A stretch of DNA of 64,000 nt from Rebecca billardiae RCC1528. Its lineage: Eukaryota > Protista > Haptophyta. Positions 23,486 through 33,286 of the stretch are shown here, in pieces. Made by a program: the position numbers and the translations under genes. The notes beneath the pieces are model-generated. The model searched no databases. It had not been told where the DNA came from and worked only from the letters and a program-made list of their open reading frames with translations. The first letter of the stretch is position 1. Every line of letters begins with the position of its first letter. The stretch is taken from positions 124,001 to 188,000 of the forward strand of contig OZ251253.1 of the NCBI GenBank assembly GCA_965240325.2. The letters run 5' to 3'.

Positions 23486-23885
23486 CGGCGAGGCGCTTGC
23501 TCTCGCTCTCGCGCGCGCGCGCTCGCTCTCTCTCACCGCGCGGCGCGCGCCGCCGCCGCCGCTGCCGCTGAGGGGTGGCGCACTCGATCGAGCCCGCCTG
23601 TCGTCGACGAGCGGCGCTTTCCGAGTGGAGAGTCGTCGGTTGGTTAGAAAAGACGCGACCGGCGACCGTTGGCCGAGCGAGTTTTCGAGGCTGCCGATTT
23701 TGAATGATCAATGAATTTGTGCGCACGCAGATTTTCCGGTGGACGAGTCGCACCGGACTCGCGCAAGGGCCGCCGTTGCGCCGGCCGAGCCGGACTCGAA
23801 ACGGCTTTTTCTTGCCCTCGCCCATCGCCCGGCCGGAGGCGTCCAGGCGAGCCGCACCCGGCCGTGCCCCCGCCCGCACGGCGCG
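23486..23885. promoter_or_regulatory. Probable bidirectional promoter (BRCT gene / Sfi1-repeat gene)
   Basis: 400-bp AT-richer gap between divergent ATGs at 23485 (-) and 23886 (+). Confidence 0.5.
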
Positions 23886-26800
23886 ATGACCGAGCTCGCG
23901 CGCCGCCTCGCGCGGCTCGACGCGCGGCTCTCGGGCCTGGAGCACTCGGCGCCGCCGCCCGCCGCCCCCCCCGCCCCGCACGACGCCGCCGCCGCCGCCG
24001 CCACCACCGCACCGCACCACGCGCGCCGCGCCGCGTCCGCGCCGCCAAGTCCGCACAAGCAGCGCGCGTACACGGCCTACGTGCGAGCGCGGCGCGCGCG
24101 CGCGCGGCGGCGCGCGTTCGGCACGTGGCGCGGCGTCGCGTCGGCGCAGCACGCCACCTCGGCGCGCGCGCACACGCCGCCGCGCGCGCACACGCCGCCG
24201 CGCGCGCACGCGCCGACCGCGGCCGCCACCGCCGCCGCGTCACCCGCCCGTTGGATCCCGCCGCCGGCCAAGACGTCGCCGCCGCCGAAGCGGCCGCCGG
24301 CGGTGGCGCTGCGGTACGAGCGCGACCGGCGGCAGCTCGAGCTCATGCGCCGCGTCGCGCTGCGCTGGGCCGCGCGCAGCGCGACGCCCGGCGCCGACGG
24401 CGCGCCGCCGCGCGCGCCGGCGCTGCATCCGCCGCACGTGGCGGCGGCCGCGGCCGCGCGCGCCGCGGCGCCGCCGCACCAGCTCCCGCGGGCGCTCCCG
24501 TGCGCGGAGGGCGCGCCGCCGCACGCCGCGCTCGCGCCCCTCTTCGCAGAGACGCTCGCGCGCTGGGCGTGCCAGCGCGCGGCCGAGGCCGTCGCGCGCC
24601 TGCGCGCGCGGCGCGCGCGCGCGCGGCTGCGCGCGGCGCGCGGCGCGCAGGCGCGCGTGCACGCGTGGGCGCGCGGCGCGCGGCGCGCGCTGCGCATCTG
24701 GCTCGCGCGGCGCAAGCGCGGCGCGGCGCTCGGCGCACTGCGCGCGCGCGCACTCGAGGGGCGCGCGCAGCGCAGGGCGCGCGCCGCGCTCGGCGCGCTC
24801 GGCGCGCGCGCGGCGCGGCGCGGCGCGCGCGCGCGCGGCGCGCGCGGCGCGGCGCGGCGCGCGCGCGGCCGCGCGCTCGCGCGCTGGGCGGCGGCCGCGG
24901 CCGCGCGCGCGCCGCTCGCCGCGGCGGCGCGCGCGTGGCGCACGTTCGGCGGCGCGCGCGGCTGGCGCGCGTGGCGCGCGGCCGCGGCCGCGCGCGCCGC
25001 GCACGCGCCGCCGCGCGCGCTCCGCCGCCGCGCGCTCGGCCGCTGGGTGGCGTGGGCGCGCGCGTGGCGCGGCCGCGCGCGCGCAGTCGCGGCCGCGCAG
25101 CGCGCCGGCGCGCACTGGCGGCGCGGCGCGCGCGGCGGCGCGTGGGCGGCGTGGGCGGCCGCGGCGTCGGCGGCGTCGGCGGGCGCGCGCGCGCTGCGCG
25201 CGTGGCGCGCGCGCGCGCGCGGCGCGGCGTGGCGCGCGTGGGCGGCGAGCGCGCGCGTGCGCGCGCTCGCCGCGCGCGGCGCAGACGCGTGGGCCGCACG
25301 CGCCGGCGCGCGCGGCGGCCGCGCGGGCGGCGCGCTGCGCGCGTGGCGCCGCGCCGCGGCGGCGCGCGGCCGCGCGCTCGGCCGCGTCGGCGCGGCCGCC
25401 GCGCGGTGGCGCGCCGGCGGCGTGGCGCGCGCGCTGCGCCGGTGGGCGGAGGCGGCGGAGGCGCGCTGGGCCGCCGCAGACGCCGTCGCCGACGCGCTGA
25501 GCGTGTGGCGCGGCGGCCGCGCGGGCGGCGCGCTGCGCGCGTGGCGCCGCGCGGCCGCGGAGGGCGCGCGCGGCCGCGCGCTGCGGCGCGGCGCGGCGCG
25601 CGCGTGGCGCGGCGCGCGCGCGGGCCGCGCGCTACGCACGTGGGCGGCGGCTGCGGCGCGCGCGGCGCACGCGCTCGCGCGCGTGCGCGACGCCGCCGCC
25701 ATGTGGCGCGGCGGCCTCGCCGCCGAGGCGCTGCGCGCGTGGCACGCCACCGCAGCCGCCGCCGCGCGCGCCGCCGCGCTGCGCGGCCGCGTCGCGCGCG
25801 CGTGGCGCGGCGCGCGGCGCGGCCGCGCGCTGCGCGCGTGGGCGGCCGCGGCGGCGGCGCGCGTCGACGCGCTGGTGCGCGTGCGCGCCGCGGCGAGCAT
25901 GTGGCGCGGCGGCTTGCTCGGCGAGGCGCTGCGCGCGTGGCGCGCCACCACCGCCGCCGCCGCGCGCGCGGCCGCGCTGCGCGGCCGCGTCGCGCGCGCG
26001 TGGCGCGGCTCGCGCCGCGGCCGCGCGCTGCGCGCGTGGGCGGCCGCGGCCGCCGCGCGCACCGCCGCGCTGCGCCGCGTGGCGGAGGCGGCGGGCATGT
26101 GGCGCGGCGGCTTGCTCGGCGAGGCACTGCGCGCGTGGCACCACACTGCCGCCGCTGCGGTGCGCGCCACCGCGCTGCGCGGCCGCGTCGCGCGCGCGTG
26201 GCGCGGCGCGCGCCGCGGCCGCGCGCTGCGCGCGTGGGCGGCCGCGGCGGCCGCGGCCGCGGCCGCGGCCGACGCGGCGGCCGACGCGGCGGCGGTGTGG
26301 CGCGGCGGGCTGCTCGGCGAGGCGTTCCGGCTGTGGCGCGCGCGCGCGCGCGCGCTGCTGCGCACGCTCGTGCTGCGCCGCGCCGCCGCGCGCGTGTGGC
26401 GCGGCGGCCGCGCCGCGGCCGCGCTGCGCGCGTGGGCGGCCGCGGCCGCGCCGCGCGCCGCCGCGCGCCGAGCCGCGCGCGCCGCCGCCGCCGCGTGGCG
26501 CGGCGGGCTCGCGGCGGATGCGCTCTGGGCGTGGCGCGCGCACGCGCGCGCGCGCGCGCGCGCGCACGACGCCGCGCGCGACGCGCGCGCGCGCGCCGCC
26601 GCGGCGGCCGTGCGCGCGTGGGCCGCCGCCGCGCGCGCGCTCGGCGGCGCGCGGCGCGCGGCGCGCGCGCTGCGCGCCGCGCGCGCCGCGCCTGCGGCCG
26701 CGCGCTGGCGCGCGGCCGCGGCGCGGCTGCACGCGGCGCGGCTGCGCGGCGTGCGCGCGGCGCGCGTGTGGCGCGGCGGCGCGCGACTCGGCGCGCTGCG

Positions 26801-28085
26801 CGCGTGGGCGCGCGCCGCGTCCGCGCGCGCCGAACGCGCGGACGCGGCCGCGCGGCACGCGGCCGCGGCGACGCTGCGGCGCGCGGCGGCGGGCGCGGCG
26901 CGCGCAGCGCGCTCGCGCGCGCCCGCCGCGCCCGCGGCGGCGGCGGCGGCGGCGGCGCGGCGGCGCGCGATGCGGCGGTGCGTGCGCGCGTGGGCGCTGG
27001 GCGTGCGCGCGCGCAACCTCACGCGCCTCCGCGCGCGCGTGCTGCGCACCGCGCGCGCCCGCCGGCTGCGCGCGTGGGCGGCGGCCGCGGCGGCGGGCGG
27101 CGCCGCGCGCGGCCGCGGCGCCGCGGCCGCGCGCGTCGCGCGCGCGTGCGCGCTCGACTCGGCGGTGCACCGCTGGCGCGCGCGCGCGGACGCGCGTCGC
27201 GCGCGCGTGCGCGCGGCGACGCGCACGCGGCTGCGCGGGCGGCTGGGCGAGTGCGCCGCCATCGCCGCCGAGCTGCGCGCGGCGGCGGGGCTGCCGCCGC
27301 GGCCGCTGCGGCGCGCGCGGCTGGCGGCGGCGACCGCGGCGGCGGCGCCCGGCGGCGGCTTCGGCGGCGCGCGCAGCGCGGCGGTGCGCGCCGGCCCGGC
27401 CGACGCCGACGCCGAGGACGCGGCCTCCGACGCCGACGCTGCCGCCGCCGCGCTCGGCGCCGACCCCGCCAGCCCCGGCGGCAGCCCGCGCGCCGCCGGC
27501 CGCGCCGCCGCCGCCGGCCGCGCCGCCGGCGCCGGCCGCTGGCCGGGCGGCGTGCCGCCGCAGCTCTCGCCGACGCCCCTCTACCGTTCTGTGGCGGAGC
27601 TGACGGCGCTGGGGCTGCTGGCGGGCGGGCGGGCCGCGCGGCCGAGCTCGGACCACGAGGCCGCGCCCGTGCCGCGCGCGCTGCACGCCGCAGCGTCGCC
27701 GCCGACTCGCGCGCCGCGGCCGGCGCGCGGCAGCGGCGGCAGCGGCTCCGCCGCCGCGGCCGGCGGCGCGCCGGTCGGCGGCGGCGCTGCGCCTCACGAG
27801 CGCGGGGGCGGCATTCTGGGCGCGCCGGGCGTGGAGGTGGGCTCATTGGTGGGCGCTCGCGCGTGCGGCTGGCCGCCGGTCGGCGGCACCGCCGCGGCCG
27901 CCGGCGGCGGCGGCGGCGGCGCGGTGGCGGCGGCGCGCGCCGCGGCCGCGCGCCTCCTAGCGGCGGCGCCGCCCGCGGACGCGGCGGACGAGGCGGAGGA
28001 GACGGGCGAGCGCATCGGGGGCGAGGGCGAGGAGGCGTCCGGGGCCCCGGGAGCCGTCGCCGTCGACGTGCTCTGGGGCCTCTGA
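23886..28085 (+). CDS. Sfi1-repeat (centrin-binding-like) helical protein
   Basis: Many A/LxxAW(R/A) Trp repeats. The core has a 198-nt (66 aa = 2 x 33 aa) period, with MWRGGL..EALRAW units at 25701, 25899, 26097 and 26295. This fits the ~33-aa Sfi1 repeat (Ax7LLx3F/Lx2WR). Confidence 0.7.
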   Translation: MTELARRLARLDARLSGLEHSAPPPAAPPAPHDAAAAAATTAPHHARRAASAPPSPHKQRAYTAYVRARRARARRRAFGTWRGVASAQHATSARAHTPPRAHTPPRAHAPTAAATAAASPARWIPPPAKTSPPPKRPPAVALRYERDRRQLELMRRVALRWAARSATPGADGAPPRAPALHPPHVAAAAAARAAAPPHQLPRALPCAEGAPPHAALAPLFAETLARWACQRAAEAVARLRARRARARLRAARGAQARVHAWARGARRALRIWLARRKRGAALGALRARALEGRAQRRARAALGALGARAARRGARARGARGAARRARGRALARWAAAAAARAPLAAAARAWRTFGGARGWRAWRAAAAARAAHAPPRALRRRALGRWVAWARAWRGRARAVAAAQRAGAHWRRGARGGAWAAWAAAASAASAGARALRAWRARARGAAWRAWAASARVRALAARGADAWAARAGARGGRAGGALRAWRRAAAARGRALGRVGAAAARWRAGGVARALRRWAEAAEARWAAADAVADALSVWRGGRAGGALRAWRRAAAEGARGRALRRGAARAWRGARAGRALRTWAAAAARAAHALARVRDAAAMWRGGLAAEALRAWHATAAAAARAAALRGRVARAWRGARRGRALRAWAAAAAARVDALVRVRAAASMWRGGLLGEALRAWRATTAAAARAAALRGRVARAWRGSRRGRALRAWAAAAAARTAALRRVAEAAGMWRGGLLGEALRAWHHTAAAAVRATALRGRVARAWRGARRGRALRAWAAAAAAAAAAADAAADAAAVWRGGLLGEAFRLWRARARALLRTLVLRRAAARVWRGGRAAAALRAWAAAAAPRAAARRAARAAAAAWRGGLAADALWAWRAHARARARAHDAARDARARAAAAAVRAWAAAARALGGARRAARALRAARAAPAAARWRAAAARLHAARLRGVRAARVWRGGARLGALRAWARAASARAERADAAARHAAAATLRRAAAGAARAARSRAPAAPAAAAAAAARRRAMRRCVRAWALGVRARNLTRLRARVLRTARARRLRAWAAAAAAGGAARGRGAAAARVARACALDSAVHRWRARADARRARVRAATRTRLRGRLGECAAIAAELRAAAGLPPRPLRRARLAAATAAAAPGGGFGGARSAAVRAGPADADAEDAASDADAAAAALGADPASPGGSPRAAGRAAAAGRAAGAGRWPGGVPPQLSPTPLYRSVAELTALGLLAGGRAARPSSDHEAAPVPRALHAAASPPTRAPRPARGSGGSGSAAAAGGAPVGGGAAPHERGGGILGAPGVEVGSLVGARACGWPPVGGTAAAAGGGGGGAVAAARAAAARLLAAAPPADAADEAEETGERIGGEGEEASGAPGAVAVDVLWGL

Positions 28086-28421
28086 CGCCGAGCCGCCCTT
28101 TTCGCCGCGCTGGCTGCGGCTTGCGGCAGCGGTGGCAGCGGCCATCGCCCGGCAGCGGCCGAGGCGACCCGGGTTCGTCCGTGCGCTCAGACGACGAGGC
28201 GCGAACCACCTGGCTGCAGAACGGCGCGCCAGACCACTAGAAACGGTCGCCGGCTCGTAGAAACGACTCACTGGCGCGGCTCACACTACAAAGTTGAGTA
28301 ACCCGGCGTACCGGTCGGCTCCCTGAAAGTACCAGGGTCGCGGCACGCACGCCCCAAACCTCGTCTCACCGACCTGAGAGCCCGCACGCCTCCGCCGCGC
28401 TCTCTCCCGCCCCTCCTCACC

Positions 28422-28748
28422 ATGTCGCACTCGATGATCGACACCACGCTCCCGGCGACGCGCCGCGACCGCCGGCTGTACCGCAACGGCTCGCAGCGAC
28501 TCAGCTTCACCGGCGAGGGCAACCACGAGCTCGCCGCCGCGCTCAAGCAGGCGGCCGACCACAGCGAGCCGTTCCACTCGCCGCGCGTCTCGACGGACTC
28601 GAGCGCGCCGCTCTACACGAAGCGCGACCGGCTGGCGGTGCGCAGCTGGCGCGGCTTTGAGGGCCTCGCGGTGACGCACGGCTGGAGCGTCGACGATCCG
28701 GTCAAGAAGGCCGCGCCCGCGCCGCAGGACGTGCAGGCCGGCGGCTAG
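28422..28748 (+). CDS. Small unknown protein, family copy 1 (108 aa, ends VQAGG)
   Basis: Paralogous to three downstream ORFs; strong G/C-ending codon bias; CACC-ATG start context. Confidence 0.85.
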   Translation: MSHSMIDTTLPATRRDRRLYRNGSQRLSFTGEGNHELAAALKQAADHSEPFHSPRVSTDSSAPLYTKRDRLAVRSWRGFEGLAVTHGWSVDDPVKKAAPAPQDVQAGG

Positions 28749-30124
28749 GCGCGCCGCGCAACCGGCGCTGAACATCACCATGCGCTGGACCGGCGCAACA
28801 GCAGCCTCGTCCACCTAGTGCACACTACACTCGACGCACACCCGCACCGTCGTGTCCGCTCAACCTGCACCCAGTTCGTGACCCGCACTCGTGTCTGTAC
28901 CCTACGCTCGCTCCGGCCCGCGGGCGCCACCGGCGCCCCGCCGCCCCGCGGGCCCGGCGGCGTCGCCGGCCCGCCGGCCCGCGCGGTCGGCCCGTGCGGC
29001 TGCCGCGTCGGGTGTGGCAGCAAGTCACTGTGATTGCACACCCAGTCCGATTGATCAGTCTGCCATCTCCGGCCTGCCCGCTGAAGCACCTCTACTACTA
29101 TGCAAGCAAACTGTACGGTAGCGAGAGTATGTCAGCGTTCCGCGGTTGGACAGTACTTGACGCCGGTTTGGCGCCCGCGCGGCGAGGGCGACGACGGGCG
29201 TACACGGGGCCCGCGGCGGCGGGAAGCGCGCGGGCGCGGCCGAGAACGGCACGGTCCGGACGCCTCTCGCCAGCCGCGGACGCGCACCGCGCCTCCTCCT
29301 CGCACGCTGCTAACTTGATCCGGGTTAAACGGTGGTTTTGCTGCCGACCAGCTCAAGTTCCACGGCTGGTCAAGGTTCGGCTTGCGACCTCGCCGCTGGT
29401 GCTTGCAAGAAGGTACATGAGTTGGTCGAACTCCCACGCACCCGCTCTGCGCTCGTCGACGCCCTCTGAAGGTGACTCGGGGTGCATGCGGGGCAGTGGA
29501 ATGCAGTGGTTCGGCGTTGCCTCTCAGTCGTCCAGCGCGCAGGCCATGTAGCGCGGGTGTGGTGCGCGCATGGCCCGGTAATTCGGTCGCGGCATGTCTG
29601 TCTGGGCTGCCCAAGGCCTGCCGCACCGCAAAGCGAGCGCTCAGGAGCGTGTGCCGACCGTGCCAGCCCCGCCGAGATGGGGCACTTCGCTGGGAAATGC
29701 GGTGTCAAGTTCCAAGCCCCGCCAAGTTCCAACGAGCGCTCCATAAGCAGTTGGACTTCAGATCCGTTGATCGTCTGACACGCCTGACTGAGCACCATCA
29801 CTCATCAGCGGACTGTCGTCTCGGTCTGCGAAGACCAGTACGCTGGCGCGTTCCGTGAAAAACCGCCGCCAAGTCACAAGTGTTTCGGCTTGATGACGTC
29901 GCGGACGGAACGGGCAAGTTGCAAGAAAGCTCCTGTTTTTAAGCCGCTCAGCGCCCTATTCATCGTTGACGGGCACTCGCGAAAAGCCCACAGCAAAAGC
30001 TCGCGACGAACCCTGAACTTGAATTGAGCAGGATCTCGTGGCGAGCTCGCCTCCACCTGACGCGTCCACACACAATCGCAACCTCGAGCCACCGCCTCGA
30101 ACCCGCCCCGCAACCACCACCGCC

Positions 30125-30403
30125 ATGTCGCACTCGATGATCGACACCACGCTCCCGGAGACGCGCCGCGACCGCCGGCAGTACCGCAACGGCACGCAGC
30201 GCCTCAGCTTCACCGACGACCCCGAGCTCCACGCCGCGCTCAAGCACGGCCACACCGACGAGTCGCCGCTCGCCTCGCCGCGCATCAACCCGACCGCGGC
30301 GCCGATCTACACGCAGCGCGACCGTCTCGCCGTGCGCAGCTGGCGAGGGTTCGAGAACCTCGCGGCGACGCACGCGTGGTCGGTCGAGGACACGCACGCA
30401 TAG
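30125..30403 (+). CDS. Small unknown protein, family copy 2 (92 aa)
   Basis: MSHSMIDTTLPETRRDRRQYRNG...IYTQRDRLAVRSWRGFENLAATHAWSV; GCC-ATG start context. Confidence 0.85.
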   Translation: MSHSMIDTTLPETRRDRRQYRNGTQRLSFTDDPELHAALKHGHTDESPLASPRINPTAAPIYTQRDRLAVRSWRGFENLAATHAWSVEDTHA

Positions 30404-31142
30404 GCGCTGCACGACGCCCGAGCCATCGGCCCTCTTGCTGGAGGCGCGCGAGTCCTCCCTAGCCGGCGCACACCACCGCCTTTGTGCACGCCCTGTCGCA
30501 CACTCCCTGTCCTCTGCCAACGAGTCTTTGCCGCACACGCACATCCGTGCCTGTCTCTTTTCGTCTCGCTGCATCTCGTCACTGCCGCCGCTGAGCTCAC
30601 GCTGCACGCGACGGCGGCGCTGCGCCACCGAGCCGCGGCCCGCGCCGGCCCGGCGCCGGCGTCCGCGACACCGGGCGGTCTGACGCTCCGGGCGCGCGGC
30701 GAGGATCAGCTGTCGCAGTGATACGCACCGGCTCCTGCTAGTTCTCTAGACCATGACCGCACCGAGTCAACATTAACTCTCTGAGAACCTAGCTGTCAGG
30801 CCGGCATGCGTCTTGAGCGTTGACGGCACTCTCCGAGAGTCAGTGCGGCGGAGTGGTCCCTGAGCAGCTGAGCGGTTGACGGAGCTCGTCTTTACGCCGC
30901 GGCAGAGAACGTGGCATCATCAGCGGGCCCATTATGATTCATTGGTGGCTGGCAATGAGATCCCGGGGAATCGAACTCGCAAGCCGACGACTAATCTGCC
31001 TCGTCCCAGAGCATCTGCTGTCACATACGGTGGGGGTCGTAATGTGGAAACCGCCAGGAAACGTCCCCAGCCCAGCACGCGTTCAACCACACAACGCAAC
31101 CTCGAGCCACCGCCTCGAACCCGCCCCGCAACCACCACCGCC

Positions 31143-31421
31143 ATGTCGCACTCGATGATCGACACCACGCTCCCGGAGACGCGCCGCGACCGCCGGCAGT
31201 ACCGCAACGGCACGCAGCGCCTCAGCTTCACCGACGATCCCGAGCTCCACGCCGCGCTCAAGCACGGCCACACCGACGAGTCGCCGCTCGCCTCGCCGCG
31301 CATCAACCCGACCGCGGCGCCGATCTACGCGCAGCGCGACCGTCTCGCCGTGCGCAGCTGGCGAGGGTTCGAGAACCTCGCGGCGACGCACGCATGGTCG
31401 GTCGAGGACACGCACGCATAG
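31143..31421 (+). CDS. Small unknown protein, family copy 3 (92 aa)
   Basis: Differs from copy 2 by 3 nt (2 synonymous, 1 T>A). Confidence 0.85.
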   Translation: MSHSMIDTTLPETRRDRRQYRNGTQRLSFTDDPELHAALKHGHTDESPLASPRINPTAAPIYAQRDRLAVRSWRGFENLAATHAWSVEDTHA

Positions 31422-32351
31422 GCGCTGCACGACGCCCGAGCCATCGGCCCTCTTGCTGGAGGCGCGCGCCGCCGCACGCGGCCGCTGAGTCGAGTCCTCC
31501 CTAGCCCGCACACCACCGCCTCTGTGCACGCCCTGTCGCACACTCCCTGTCCTCTGCCAACGAGTCTTTGCCGCACACGCACATCCGTGCCTGTCTCTTT
31601 TCGTCTTGCCGCTTCTCCTCACTGCCGCTGCTGAGCGCACGCTGCACGCGACGGCACTACGCCACAGCCGGCGGCCGCCCGCGCCGGGAGCGCCGCCGCG
31701 GCGGCGCGGGCCGCGAGAGTGCCAACGGCACCGGGTGGTTCGACGCTCCGGGCGCACGGCGTGGCGTGGATCAGCTGTCGCAGTGATACGCACCGCTTCC
31801 TGCTAGTTCTCTAGATGACCGCGCTGATGTCAGTATGGCGTCTCTGAGAAGTTGGCGTACCTGCCTGTGGCGCATTAGCCGTGCAGGCCCGCGGGGCAGG
31901 CCCTGTTCACTGAACCGCAGTCCGCGGGCACGCCTCACGAGCGGTGAGCCACGAGCGGTTCGAGCTCGTCTTTACGCCGCGGCGAGAACGACGTGGCGCT
32001 GCGCCGCTTTCTTATTTAATTAGTGGCCTGTGAGATCCCGGGGGAATCGAAAGCGCGTAGGTCGACGAGTGTCTGCTTCGTCCCAGAGCACGGCACGCGT
32101 GCTTAAATCGGAGGAAGGAATAAGTCGTAATGTGGAACAACTGCCAGGAAACGTCGCGTGAGATACCCGCGTGCGCTTCGTTGTATTGTCATGCCCGAGA
32201 TGCGCGTTCAAGGACATGCGCTACCCAAACCTGAAAGTGCGATCGGGAATATGCGCCGCCGCCAGTTCACAGCCCCAACGACCTGGGCGTTGAGCGCTCA
32301 CCGCCCAAAGCCTGCTCCCCAGACGCACGCCCCAAACCACCCCATCCGCCC

Positions 32352-32687
32352 ATGTCGCACGCGATGATCGACCACTCGCTCCCGGAGACGCGGCGAGACC
32401 GCCGACAGTACCGCAACGGCGCGCAGCACCTCGCCGCGACCACGCTCACCGCCGACGAGCTCGACGCCATGATCCAGCGCGCCGGCGTCGAGAGGAAGCC
32501 CGCCGCCGCGCCGTCTAGCCTCAACCTCGACACGTCCACCATCTACACGGTGCGCGACCGGCTCAGGGTGCGCAGCTGGACGGGCTTCGAGGCGCTCGCG
32601 GTGACGCACGGATGGAGCGTCAACCAGCCCGCACCCGCGATGAAGAAGGCCGCGCCGGACGTCCCCGAGGTGCAGGCCGGCGGCTGA
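32352..32687 (+). CDS. Small unknown protein, family copy 4 (111 aa, ends VQAGG)
   Basis: Keeps both conserved blocks and the KKAAP..VQAGG tail of copy 1; the middle region has diverged. Confidence 0.85.
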   Translation: MSHAMIDHSLPETRRDRRQYRNGAQHLAATTLTADELDAMIQRAGVERKPAAAPSSLNLDTSTIYTVRDRLRVRSWTGFEALAVTHGWSVNQPAPAMKKAAPDVPEVQAGG

Positions 32688-33286
32688 GCGCGGCCACGCC
32701 GACGCGCCCCCGCCAAGGCGCCGCACACTCTCGCGCACACGCAGCAGCACCGTCCGTCGCAGTCCAACCGTGCACGCACTCGTCCCGCACACGCTCGTCT
32801 CGCTCGTACGCCTTTGCACCGACCAGTCTCCGCCTCCGTCCGCACTCAGCACCACCCAGCAGCACCCCGCCGTCACAAACCGTCCCGAGTTCCGCAGCGC
32901 CCGGGGACCGGTCTGAATTAGCCAGACGCCGCGGCCCCGGGGTCTTCCGGCGGCACGGCAGTATACCGCGCACTACTTAGTATAGCAGTATAGGCTACTG
33001 CTGCTGACGAATACGCTGATGATATCGTACATCATCGCGCGATATCGATCATCCACGCGTCGCTCTGATACGATGACGATGACTGCCAGCGATCGTCATC
33101 AGTAGAGCCTAGACTGGCCAGCGAGCGTCGCGAGTCGGCGACGCCTGCGGACCCGGACCTGGCAGCACCTGCGCGGCGCGCTGCGTAGTCCGACGCGACG
33201 AGTCAGACCTCTGCATGCCGAGCTGGGGCGCCCGTCCGCCGGCTGCGCGGCCGCCGGTGCGGTGCCACCCCGTCGTCACGCCCGGC

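Follow-up and report, generated by a model that had tools for sequence, protein, structure and literature searches.

Results

A tandem array of four small genes

We analysed a stretch of 64,000 nucleotides (nt) from the haptophyte Rebecca billardiae RCC1528 (contig OZ251253.1, positions 124,001 to 188,000), which we call the window and whose coordinates are used throughout; the whole assembly comprises 72 Mb in 41 contigs. Between 28422 and 32687 the window carries an array of four single-exon open reading frames (ORFs) on the same strand, separated by spacers of 0.7-1.4 kb, that encode small proteins of one undescribed family. The copies come in a long isoform, with a Gly-Gly end, and a short isoform that stops before it:

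28422-28748, forward strand: copy 1 (c1), long isoform of 108 amino acids (aa) ending VQAGG-stop; profile match E = 2e-59
30125-30403, forward strand: copy 2 (c2), short isoform of 92 aa from the first ATG, WSVEDTHA followed by TAG
31143-31421, forward strand: copy 3 (c3), short isoform of 92 aa ending WSVEDTHA-stop
32352-32687, forward strand: copy 4 (c4), long isoform of 111 aa, VQAGG followed by TGA; profile match E = 5e-56

In an alignment of these copies 45 of 108 columns are invariant, and they lie in an N-terminal block (N-block, MSHxMID..LPxTRRDRRxYRNG) and a C-terminal block (C-block, (I/L)YxxRDRLxVRSWxGFExLAxTHxWSV). The initial annotation of the stretch had described four co-oriented, intronless ORFs of 92-111 aa with two conserved blocks, and our coordinates, alignment and GC content at third codon positions (GC3) agree with that description. 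Its count of four copies holds for the ORFs but not for the forms they encode. Copies c2 and c3 share 99% identity across 300 nt at a unit spacing of 1018 nt, and their proteins differ by a single amino-acid change, T66A; judged by sequence, they are a very recent duplicate, and the array therefore contains three distinct forms instead of four independent ones. The most diverged copy is c4, which is 56% identical to c1. A six-frame profile search of the 72-Mb assembly returned exactly the four copies of the array.

The ORFs are protein-coding genes

The window is exceptionally rich in GC: the genes flanking the array have 83-89% GC, and the array itself lies within a stretch of 66-68% GC. ORF length alone is uninformative here, because DNA this rich in GC yields ORFs in every frame. 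The base composition by codon position is clear, with GC3 at 0.95-0.97 and GC2 at 0.53-0.54 in all four ORFs (0.97 and 0.54 in c1) versus 0.66 in every spacer. A sliding scan of 27.8-33.6 kb found strong in-phase GC3 periodicity over c1-c4 only, lost at the ORF ends, so that the spacers hold neither further exons nor other genes; the long antisense ORFs that overlap the array are out of GC3 phase.

We then measured selection as the ratio of nonsynonymous to synonymous substitution rates (dN/dS). For comparison with the array copies we chose an environmental orthologue (P0008, on a contig named L005) of different base composition, with a GC3 of 0.81 in the gene and 41% GC in its upstream flank. 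Against this orthologue the array copies have a dN/dS of 0.12-0.18 for the N-block, 0.22-0.41 for the C-block and more than 1 for the linker between them, while the tail that follows the C-block in the long isoform gives 0.29 for c1 and 1.2 for c4. The Arg codons within the invariant motif show synonymous differences between copies. All but one of the relatives described below are complete ORFs from MMETSP transcriptomes, and in the window one stretch is covered by RNA:

28381-28882, forward strand: RNA-covered stretch of c1, made up of two metatranscriptome contigs (28381-28604 and 28632-28882) of at least 99% identity

These contigs reach from 41 nt before the c1 ATG to 134 nt beyond the c1 stop and differ from the genome at one position (28697 T>G, GAT to GAG, Asp to Glu), a coverage consistent with a small monocistronic mRNA. 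Over the 4.75 kb that were compared with this one metatranscriptome run, the spacers and c2-c4 had no RNA contig.

The GC3 periodicity, the low dN/dS of the blocks, the transcripts in relatives and the RNA contigs on c1 show that the four ORFs are real protein-coding genes whose blocks are under purifying selection. Chance ORFs on a repeated non-coding element would account for the many long ORFs that overlap the array in all frames of this GC-rich DNA and for a within-array dN/dS of ~1, but they are effectively refuted by the periodicity, exactly in frame and limited to the ORFs, and by the selection tests, with a dN/dS of 0.12-0.27 in the blocks, and are scarcely credible beside protein conservation across taxa of differing base composition and complete ORFs in three transcriptomes.

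Relatives are found in Pavlovales-type haptophytes

An exhaustive search of 1.84 billion protein representatives with a profile (hidden Markov model, HMM) of the family found four true relatives, P0001, P0002, P0004 and P0005. P0007 and P0008 were added by a word-index search with a richer 8-sequence profile; a word-index protein search using c4 alone found no relatives, a profile built from the three remotest members yielded no new ones, and scans of metagenome contigs and viral contigs gave no family members. The family alignment (A3) contains 12 sequences from at least four sources: c1-c4, P0001, P0002, P0004-P0008 and P0010. The exhaustive search also returned P0003, a 574-aa ORF on a 23-kb ENA metagenome contig, with eight tandem copies of a ~60-aa unit containing YISRDRAMMFRWRGF. 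Since this repeat mimics the C-block, we rejected P0003 as a repeat-inflated chance match.

The sources of the relatives are MMETSP1335, Pavlova gyrans, a further MMETSP transcriptome and one environmental contig from JGI. The MMETSP1335 record names Chrysoculter rhomboideus (taxid 259385), and EukProt labels the same data as Rebecca sp. RCC1486, a genus of the Pavlovales. The JGI contig is L005, of 1446 nt; the 848 nt upstream of its P0008 gene (L005 1-848) have only 41% GC, so the family also occurs in a relative whose non-coding DNA is far poorer in GC. From the data so far, the family is restricted to Pavlovales-type haptophytes. No members turned up in the many other haptophyte and algal proteomes searched, although very distant kin would escape a profile built from 4 to 12 sequences of a protein of 100 aa. 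A very high GC content and an abundance of single-exon genes have been published for Pavlovales, as in Diacronema lutheri with 73% GC and 45% single-exon genes (PMC8379373). A tree of the 12 short sequences had no supported branch, and orthology of long versus short forms could not be assigned from it.

Two Arg/aromatic blocks are conserved across the family

Across the family the N-block reduces to RxDxRxYRxG followed by ~8 more residues, and the C-block to (I/L)YxxRDRxxVRSWxGFExLAxTxxW. Invariant in all 12 sequences are R14, D16, R18, Y20, R21 and G23 of the N-block and W76, G78, A83, T85 and W88 of the C-block; T30, P54, R68, D69, R70, V73, S75 and L82 are nearly so. The MSHxMID leader is found only in a close clade, and P0002, P0004 and P0005 begin just before the RxDxRxYRxG core. 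Between the blocks runs a Pro-rich, fast-evolving linker of ~30 residues, variable in length and sequence, in which 9 of the 12 sequences have a Ser or Thr before P54; this (S/T)P is a candidate proline-directed phosphosite. The tail is optional and has 15-20 residues where present, roughly P..K(K/E/D).A(L/P)...VQAGG, with a KK in c1 and c4 at 12 residues before the C-terminus.

Each block of the window copies holds a related core, and the initial annotation had read this as an ancient internal duplication. An hhalign comparison of the blocks paired TRRDRRLYR--NGSQRLSFT of the N-block with TKRDRLAVRSWRGFEGLAVT of the C-block over 19 columns at 42% identity, in the pattern T-x-R-D-R-x-x-x-R..G-x-x-x-L-x-x-T, with P = 0.0038 and a low probability of 8.7%. 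We also scored each block HMM on the opposite half of each protein and compared the result with 200 shuffles per sequence. Real sequences usually ranked in the top 0-20%, and the test was clear (<=0.010) for the N-halves of P0004 and P0005, the two most distant members, and, reciprocally, for the C-halves of c2, c3 and P0005. The N-block sequence NGFExxxAT of P0004 and P0005 resembles the GFExLAxT of the C-block. A duplication origin of the two blocks is plausible but weakly supported.

The Gly-Gly end is conserved but optional

Six of the 12 sequences end in AGG-stop (c1, c4, P0007, P0010, P0008 and P0002), and the other six (c2, c3, P0001, P0006, P0004 and P0005) have no Gly-Gly end. Both classes occur together in MMETSP1335, which has the long forms P0007 and P0010 (VQAGG), a divergent long paralogue, P0002 (AHAGG), and the short forms P0001 and P0006. 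c1, c4, P0007, P0010 and P0008 share an identical final pentapeptide, VQAGG, preceded by residues that vary. Within these five codons the window copies and L005 differ synonymously only at Ala, GCC versus GCG. The other two relatives, P0004 with the end APGA and P0005 with the end KKH, keep both blocks. Judged by these sequences, the Gly-Gly end is conserved in three sources but optional, and both isoform classes, which had been proposed from the array itself, recur in a second taxon, MMETSP1335. As for the possibility, raised with the initial annotation, that orthologues would lack the Gly-Gly terminus, four further sequences keep it (P0007, P0010, P0008 and P0002).

In the alignment the short forms c2, c3, P0001 and P0006 share one stop position, which lies seven residues beyond the final invariant Trp; c2 and c3 end in VEDTHA, and P0001 and P0006 in VETTGI or VEDTGV. 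In a DNA alignment of the copies (A4) the TAG of c2 and c3 stands opposite a Pro codon of c4, and the DNA beyond it aligns with the tails of c1 and c4, leaving a possible relic of the long tail after each short copy:

30404-30445, forward strand: possible long-tail relic after the c2 TAG, in frame, 14 codons, ending ..PLAGG
31422-31463, forward strand: the same after c3

Because the sequence is very GC-rich, this relic is only suggestive of a short form that arose from a long form by a nonsense change. Both taxa have the stop at the same position, which makes it likely that the short form arose once, before they split.

The proteins match no known family and are modelled with low confidence

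A Pfam search with the four copies, and then with all 12 members, gave no family at E up to 10; we took a hit of one member to the SelB barrel (0.09) as noise. The family profile had 0 matches among PDB sequences at E up to 10, and an ESM Atlas feature search gave no usable match. These blank searches bear out the earlier impression of proteins without recognised relatives, and the family is undescribed: it is unnamed and lacks a Pfam model, and its structure has been neither solved nor predicted with confidence.

Several known short motifs were compared by eye with the family. The 'RLSF' that recalls the PP1 RVxF and cyclin RxL motifs is not kept in c4, P0001 or P0002 (A3); the 4E-BP motif YxxxxL-hydrophobic is one residue out of register in the IYxxRDRL stretch of the C-block; and the Chlamydomonas-type Rubisco-binding WRxxL pattern does not fit A3, where there is also no plastid-targeting leader.

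AlphaFold2, run with the 4-sequence and the 12-sequence alignments, gave a mean predicted local distance difference test score (pLDDT) of 54-55 and a predicted template-modelling score (pTM) of 0.20, with a few short helices and no strands. At a pLDDT of 54 the confidence of the models is too low for fold-search matches to be meaningful. A charge-hydropathy analysis places the sequences at its boundary, with disorder-promoting residues making up 50-57% of the total.

Kyte-Doolittle means over 19 residues reach 0.37 at most, and there is therefore no transmembrane segment and no h-region of a signal peptide. The first 20 residues are strongly hydrophilic, their hydropathy averaging -0.9 to -1.5, and conservation at the N-terminus is that of mature sequence. 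By this hydropathy profile, with no dedicated predictor applied, we found no signal peptide, nor any endoplasmic reticulum signal of the type that haptophyte plastid proteins require. Cys is absent from the window copies, and four relatives have 1-2. The original description of the copies as free of signal peptide, transmembrane segment and Cys thus stands, and the proteins are likely to reside in the cytosol or nucleus.

Surroundings of the array

The duplicated copies and their neighbours share further segments of DNA:

30694-30750, forward strand: 57-nt element ~300 nt past the c2 stop
31759-31815, forward strand: second copy of the 57-nt element, ~300 nt past the c3 stop, 93% identical to the first
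30884-31075, forward strand: candidate common promoter segment upstream of c3, which aligns with the region upstream of c4 at about 31960-32160

The 57-nt element probably marks the 3' portion, either of the duplicated unit or of a 3' untranslated region, and 30884-31075 is a candidate promoter segment common to c3 and c4. In the leaders of all copies (28340-28421, 30060-30124, 32290-32351) the coding strand is strongly C-rich and G-poor; those of c1 and c4 have the word ACGCACGCCCCAAACC in common, and the start context of all copies is CCATGTCGCAC.

The gene directly upstream of the array (23711-28240, forward strand) has 89% GC, and one of its frames reads as dozens of ALRAW.../ARAWRG... repeats, an Ala/Arg/Trp-rich periodic protein. 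Between c4 and the next gene, at 32960-33100, there is a lower-GC patch with per-phase GC down to 0.38-0.47 and many short palindromes on GATATCG and CGATCG, which may be an intergenic control or termination region. An Rfam scan of 27-34 kb found no credible family, and we took a sub-threshold match to an actinobacterial small RNA (E = 0.57) as noise.

Discussion

A possible two-motif regulator

On balance, and by a small measure, we think it probable that the family is an order-restricted and probably disordered two-motif (bivalent) binder or regulator with an optional regulatory tail. The two related Arg/aromatic blocks would dock onto a conserved partner, either protein or RNA, with the variable linker serving as a spacer and perhaps as a phospho-switch. 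The optional AGG tail would alter the stability or the docking of the long isoform, rather than be a handle for conjugation.

Several points weigh against this proposal. The binding mechanism is one that we infer from the anatomy of the proteins alone. The pairwise whole-gene dN/dS within the array is ~1, a value to which the linker contributes, as does the extreme GC3 bias by lowering dS. The RNA support from the genome itself consists of two low-depth contigs, not reads, from one metatranscriptome, where DNA carry-over is possible. Low AlphaFold2 confidence obtained from only 12 sequences is no proof of disorder; at 28 residues the C-block is long for a linear motif, and packing of the two blocks into a small fold is conceivable. 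Finally, with an unsupported tree, common descent of the short forms in the two taxa is not proven.

An unlikely but not negligible alternative, which refines the bivalent-binder proposal and does not exclude it, is that the AGG end is a Gly-end C-degron or a terminal docking motif, by which long forms would be short-lived or relocalised and short forms stable. It would account for a VQAGG that stays identical in five long forms while the residues before it vary and whose Ala codon has changed synonymously, for the dN/dS of 0.29 in the c1 tail, and for the retention of long and short classes in two taxa. A study in human cells (PMC8013793) describes a C-terminal diglycine as a degron recognised by KLHDC2 and reports that normal proteomes avoid such ends. 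The Gly-end pathway is, however, documented in animals, and the tail of c4 has a dN/dS of 1.2. A stability or docking signal would be a more economical account of a conserved yet optional terminal Gly-Gly than either conjugation or a peptide precursor.

It is still less likely, though credible, that these are small basic Arg/aromatic proteins that bind nucleic acid or the ribosome, such as dormancy or hibernation-type factors, with the blocks in contact with RNA. Many hibernation-type factors are small, disordered and lineage-restricted, as these proteins appear to be. The invariant R14, R18 and R21 and the near-invariant R68 and R70 adjoin the invariant Y20, W76 and W88, and most long forms have an isoelectric point (pI) of 9.4-10. 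The short forms c2 and c3, however, are neutral (pI 7.0), P0008 (6.3) and P0005 (5.8) are acidic, and no RNA-binding family was matched in Pfam.

The initial annotation had proposed that the Gly-Gly end makes the long copies conjugatable, in the manner of ubiquitin or SUMO, or else marks a peptide precursor with a terminal amidation signal; our evidence argues against both ideas. A bolder reading has a very small chance of being right: the long isoforms might be a disordered, GG-ended eukaryotic modifier without a beta-grasp fold, following a Pup-like logic that arose independently in haptophytes, or the long and short pair might form a stability switch, fixed in the genome and built on a Gly-end degron, and the short isoforms would then be non-conjugatable or stable competitors for one and the same partner.

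Conjugatable tags proper, whether ubiquitin/SUMO-like or disordered and Pup-like, joined through the terminal Gly and accompanied by non-conjugatable short forms, are more improbable again. Three taxa and the divergent P0002 (AHAGG) do keep a free C-terminal Gly-Gly without extension, ~105 aa is within the ubiquitin-like size range, and the apparent disorder recalls bacterial Pup. Yet none of the 12 members matched a ubiquitin, Urm1, ThiS/MoaD or Pup family at E up to 10, no PDB sequence was matched, and neither AlphaFold2 model, at its low confidence (pLDDT 54), contains a beta-strand. The C-terminus of Pup is GGQ or GGE rather than GG, and pupylation needs PafA/Dop; the Pup ligase family PF03136 had 0 matches in the 72-Mb assembly, in a search whose Corynebacterium glutamicum control was positive. 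Moreover, P0004 (PGA end), P0005 (KKH end) and all short forms keep the blocks without the Gly-Gly, and the conserved function therefore resides in the blocks.

Less credible still is a secreted, processed precursor cut at KK to release a C-terminal peptide with its last Gly amidated: c1 and c4 have the KK and the terminal Gly, and five PHM-type copper monooxygenase domains (Cu2_monooxygen, PF01082) exceed the Pfam cut-off in the genome, but there is no signal peptide by hydropathy, the first 20 residues being hydrophilic, the dibasic site is not kept in relatives (KE in P0007, KE in P0008, KD in P0002), and the strongest constraint is on the blocks and not on the would-be peptide. The PF01082 domains are located at C7:3064866-3065240, C5:4254436-4254783, C20:641138-641503, C13:510568-510720 and C3:1949601-1949879. 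By these matches the genome encodes peptidylglycine- or dopamine-beta-monooxygenase-like enzymes, the domain occurring also in non-amidating monooxygenases.

Significance

A tandem array of taxonomically restricted small proteins is an ordinary phenomenon; such proteins are common and mostly never explained, and no new kind of mechanism is demonstrated here. What the array offers is a cleanly defined family, with two invariant Arg/aromatic blocks in 12 sequences from at least four sources, and a natural experiment in which paralogues with and without a Gly-Gly tail stand side by side in two taxa. The Pavlovales are of interest for aquaculture and lipid biochemistry, and nuclear genomes from this order are just starting to emerge. 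Should the tail act as a degron or as a conjugation handle, those pathways would be extended to haptophytes; if it is neither, the family stays a well-documented orphan.

Comparison with known systems

The long isoforms resemble ubiquitin, Urm1, MoaD and ThiS in their length and their free C-terminal Gly-Gly, and differ from them in having no sequence match and no beta-grasp in their low-confidence models, with half of the family lacking the Gly-Gly. They resemble Pup in being small, apparently disordered and provided with a Gly-Gly at or near the C-terminus; unlike Pup, they end in AGG-stop, match no Pup model in Pfam, have no Pup-ligase homologue in the genome and belong to a eukaryotic host. 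We know of no Gly-end C-degron pathway in haptophytes. The likeness to the Gly-end C-degrons of CRL2-KLHDC2 substrates in animals (PMC8013793) lies in a conserved terminal -GG that a nonsense codon would have removed in the sister isoform.

A further comparison is with the small disordered regulators. CP12, 4E-BP, ARPP-19/ENSA and the PP1 inhibitors are small disordered proteins that act through short conserved motifs. The present family has none of the motifs that define them: it lacks the Cys pairs of CP12, the Leu of its IYxxRDRL is at Y+6 and not at Y+5 as in 4E-BP, and its RVxF-like 'RLSF', unlike the motif of PP1 inhibitors, is not kept in c4 or P0001. In its overall build the family is nevertheless like these regulators, with ~100 aa, a low-complexity or low-confidence structure, sharp motifs, fast-evolving linkers, no enzymatic domain and a candidate proline-directed phosphosite in the linker.

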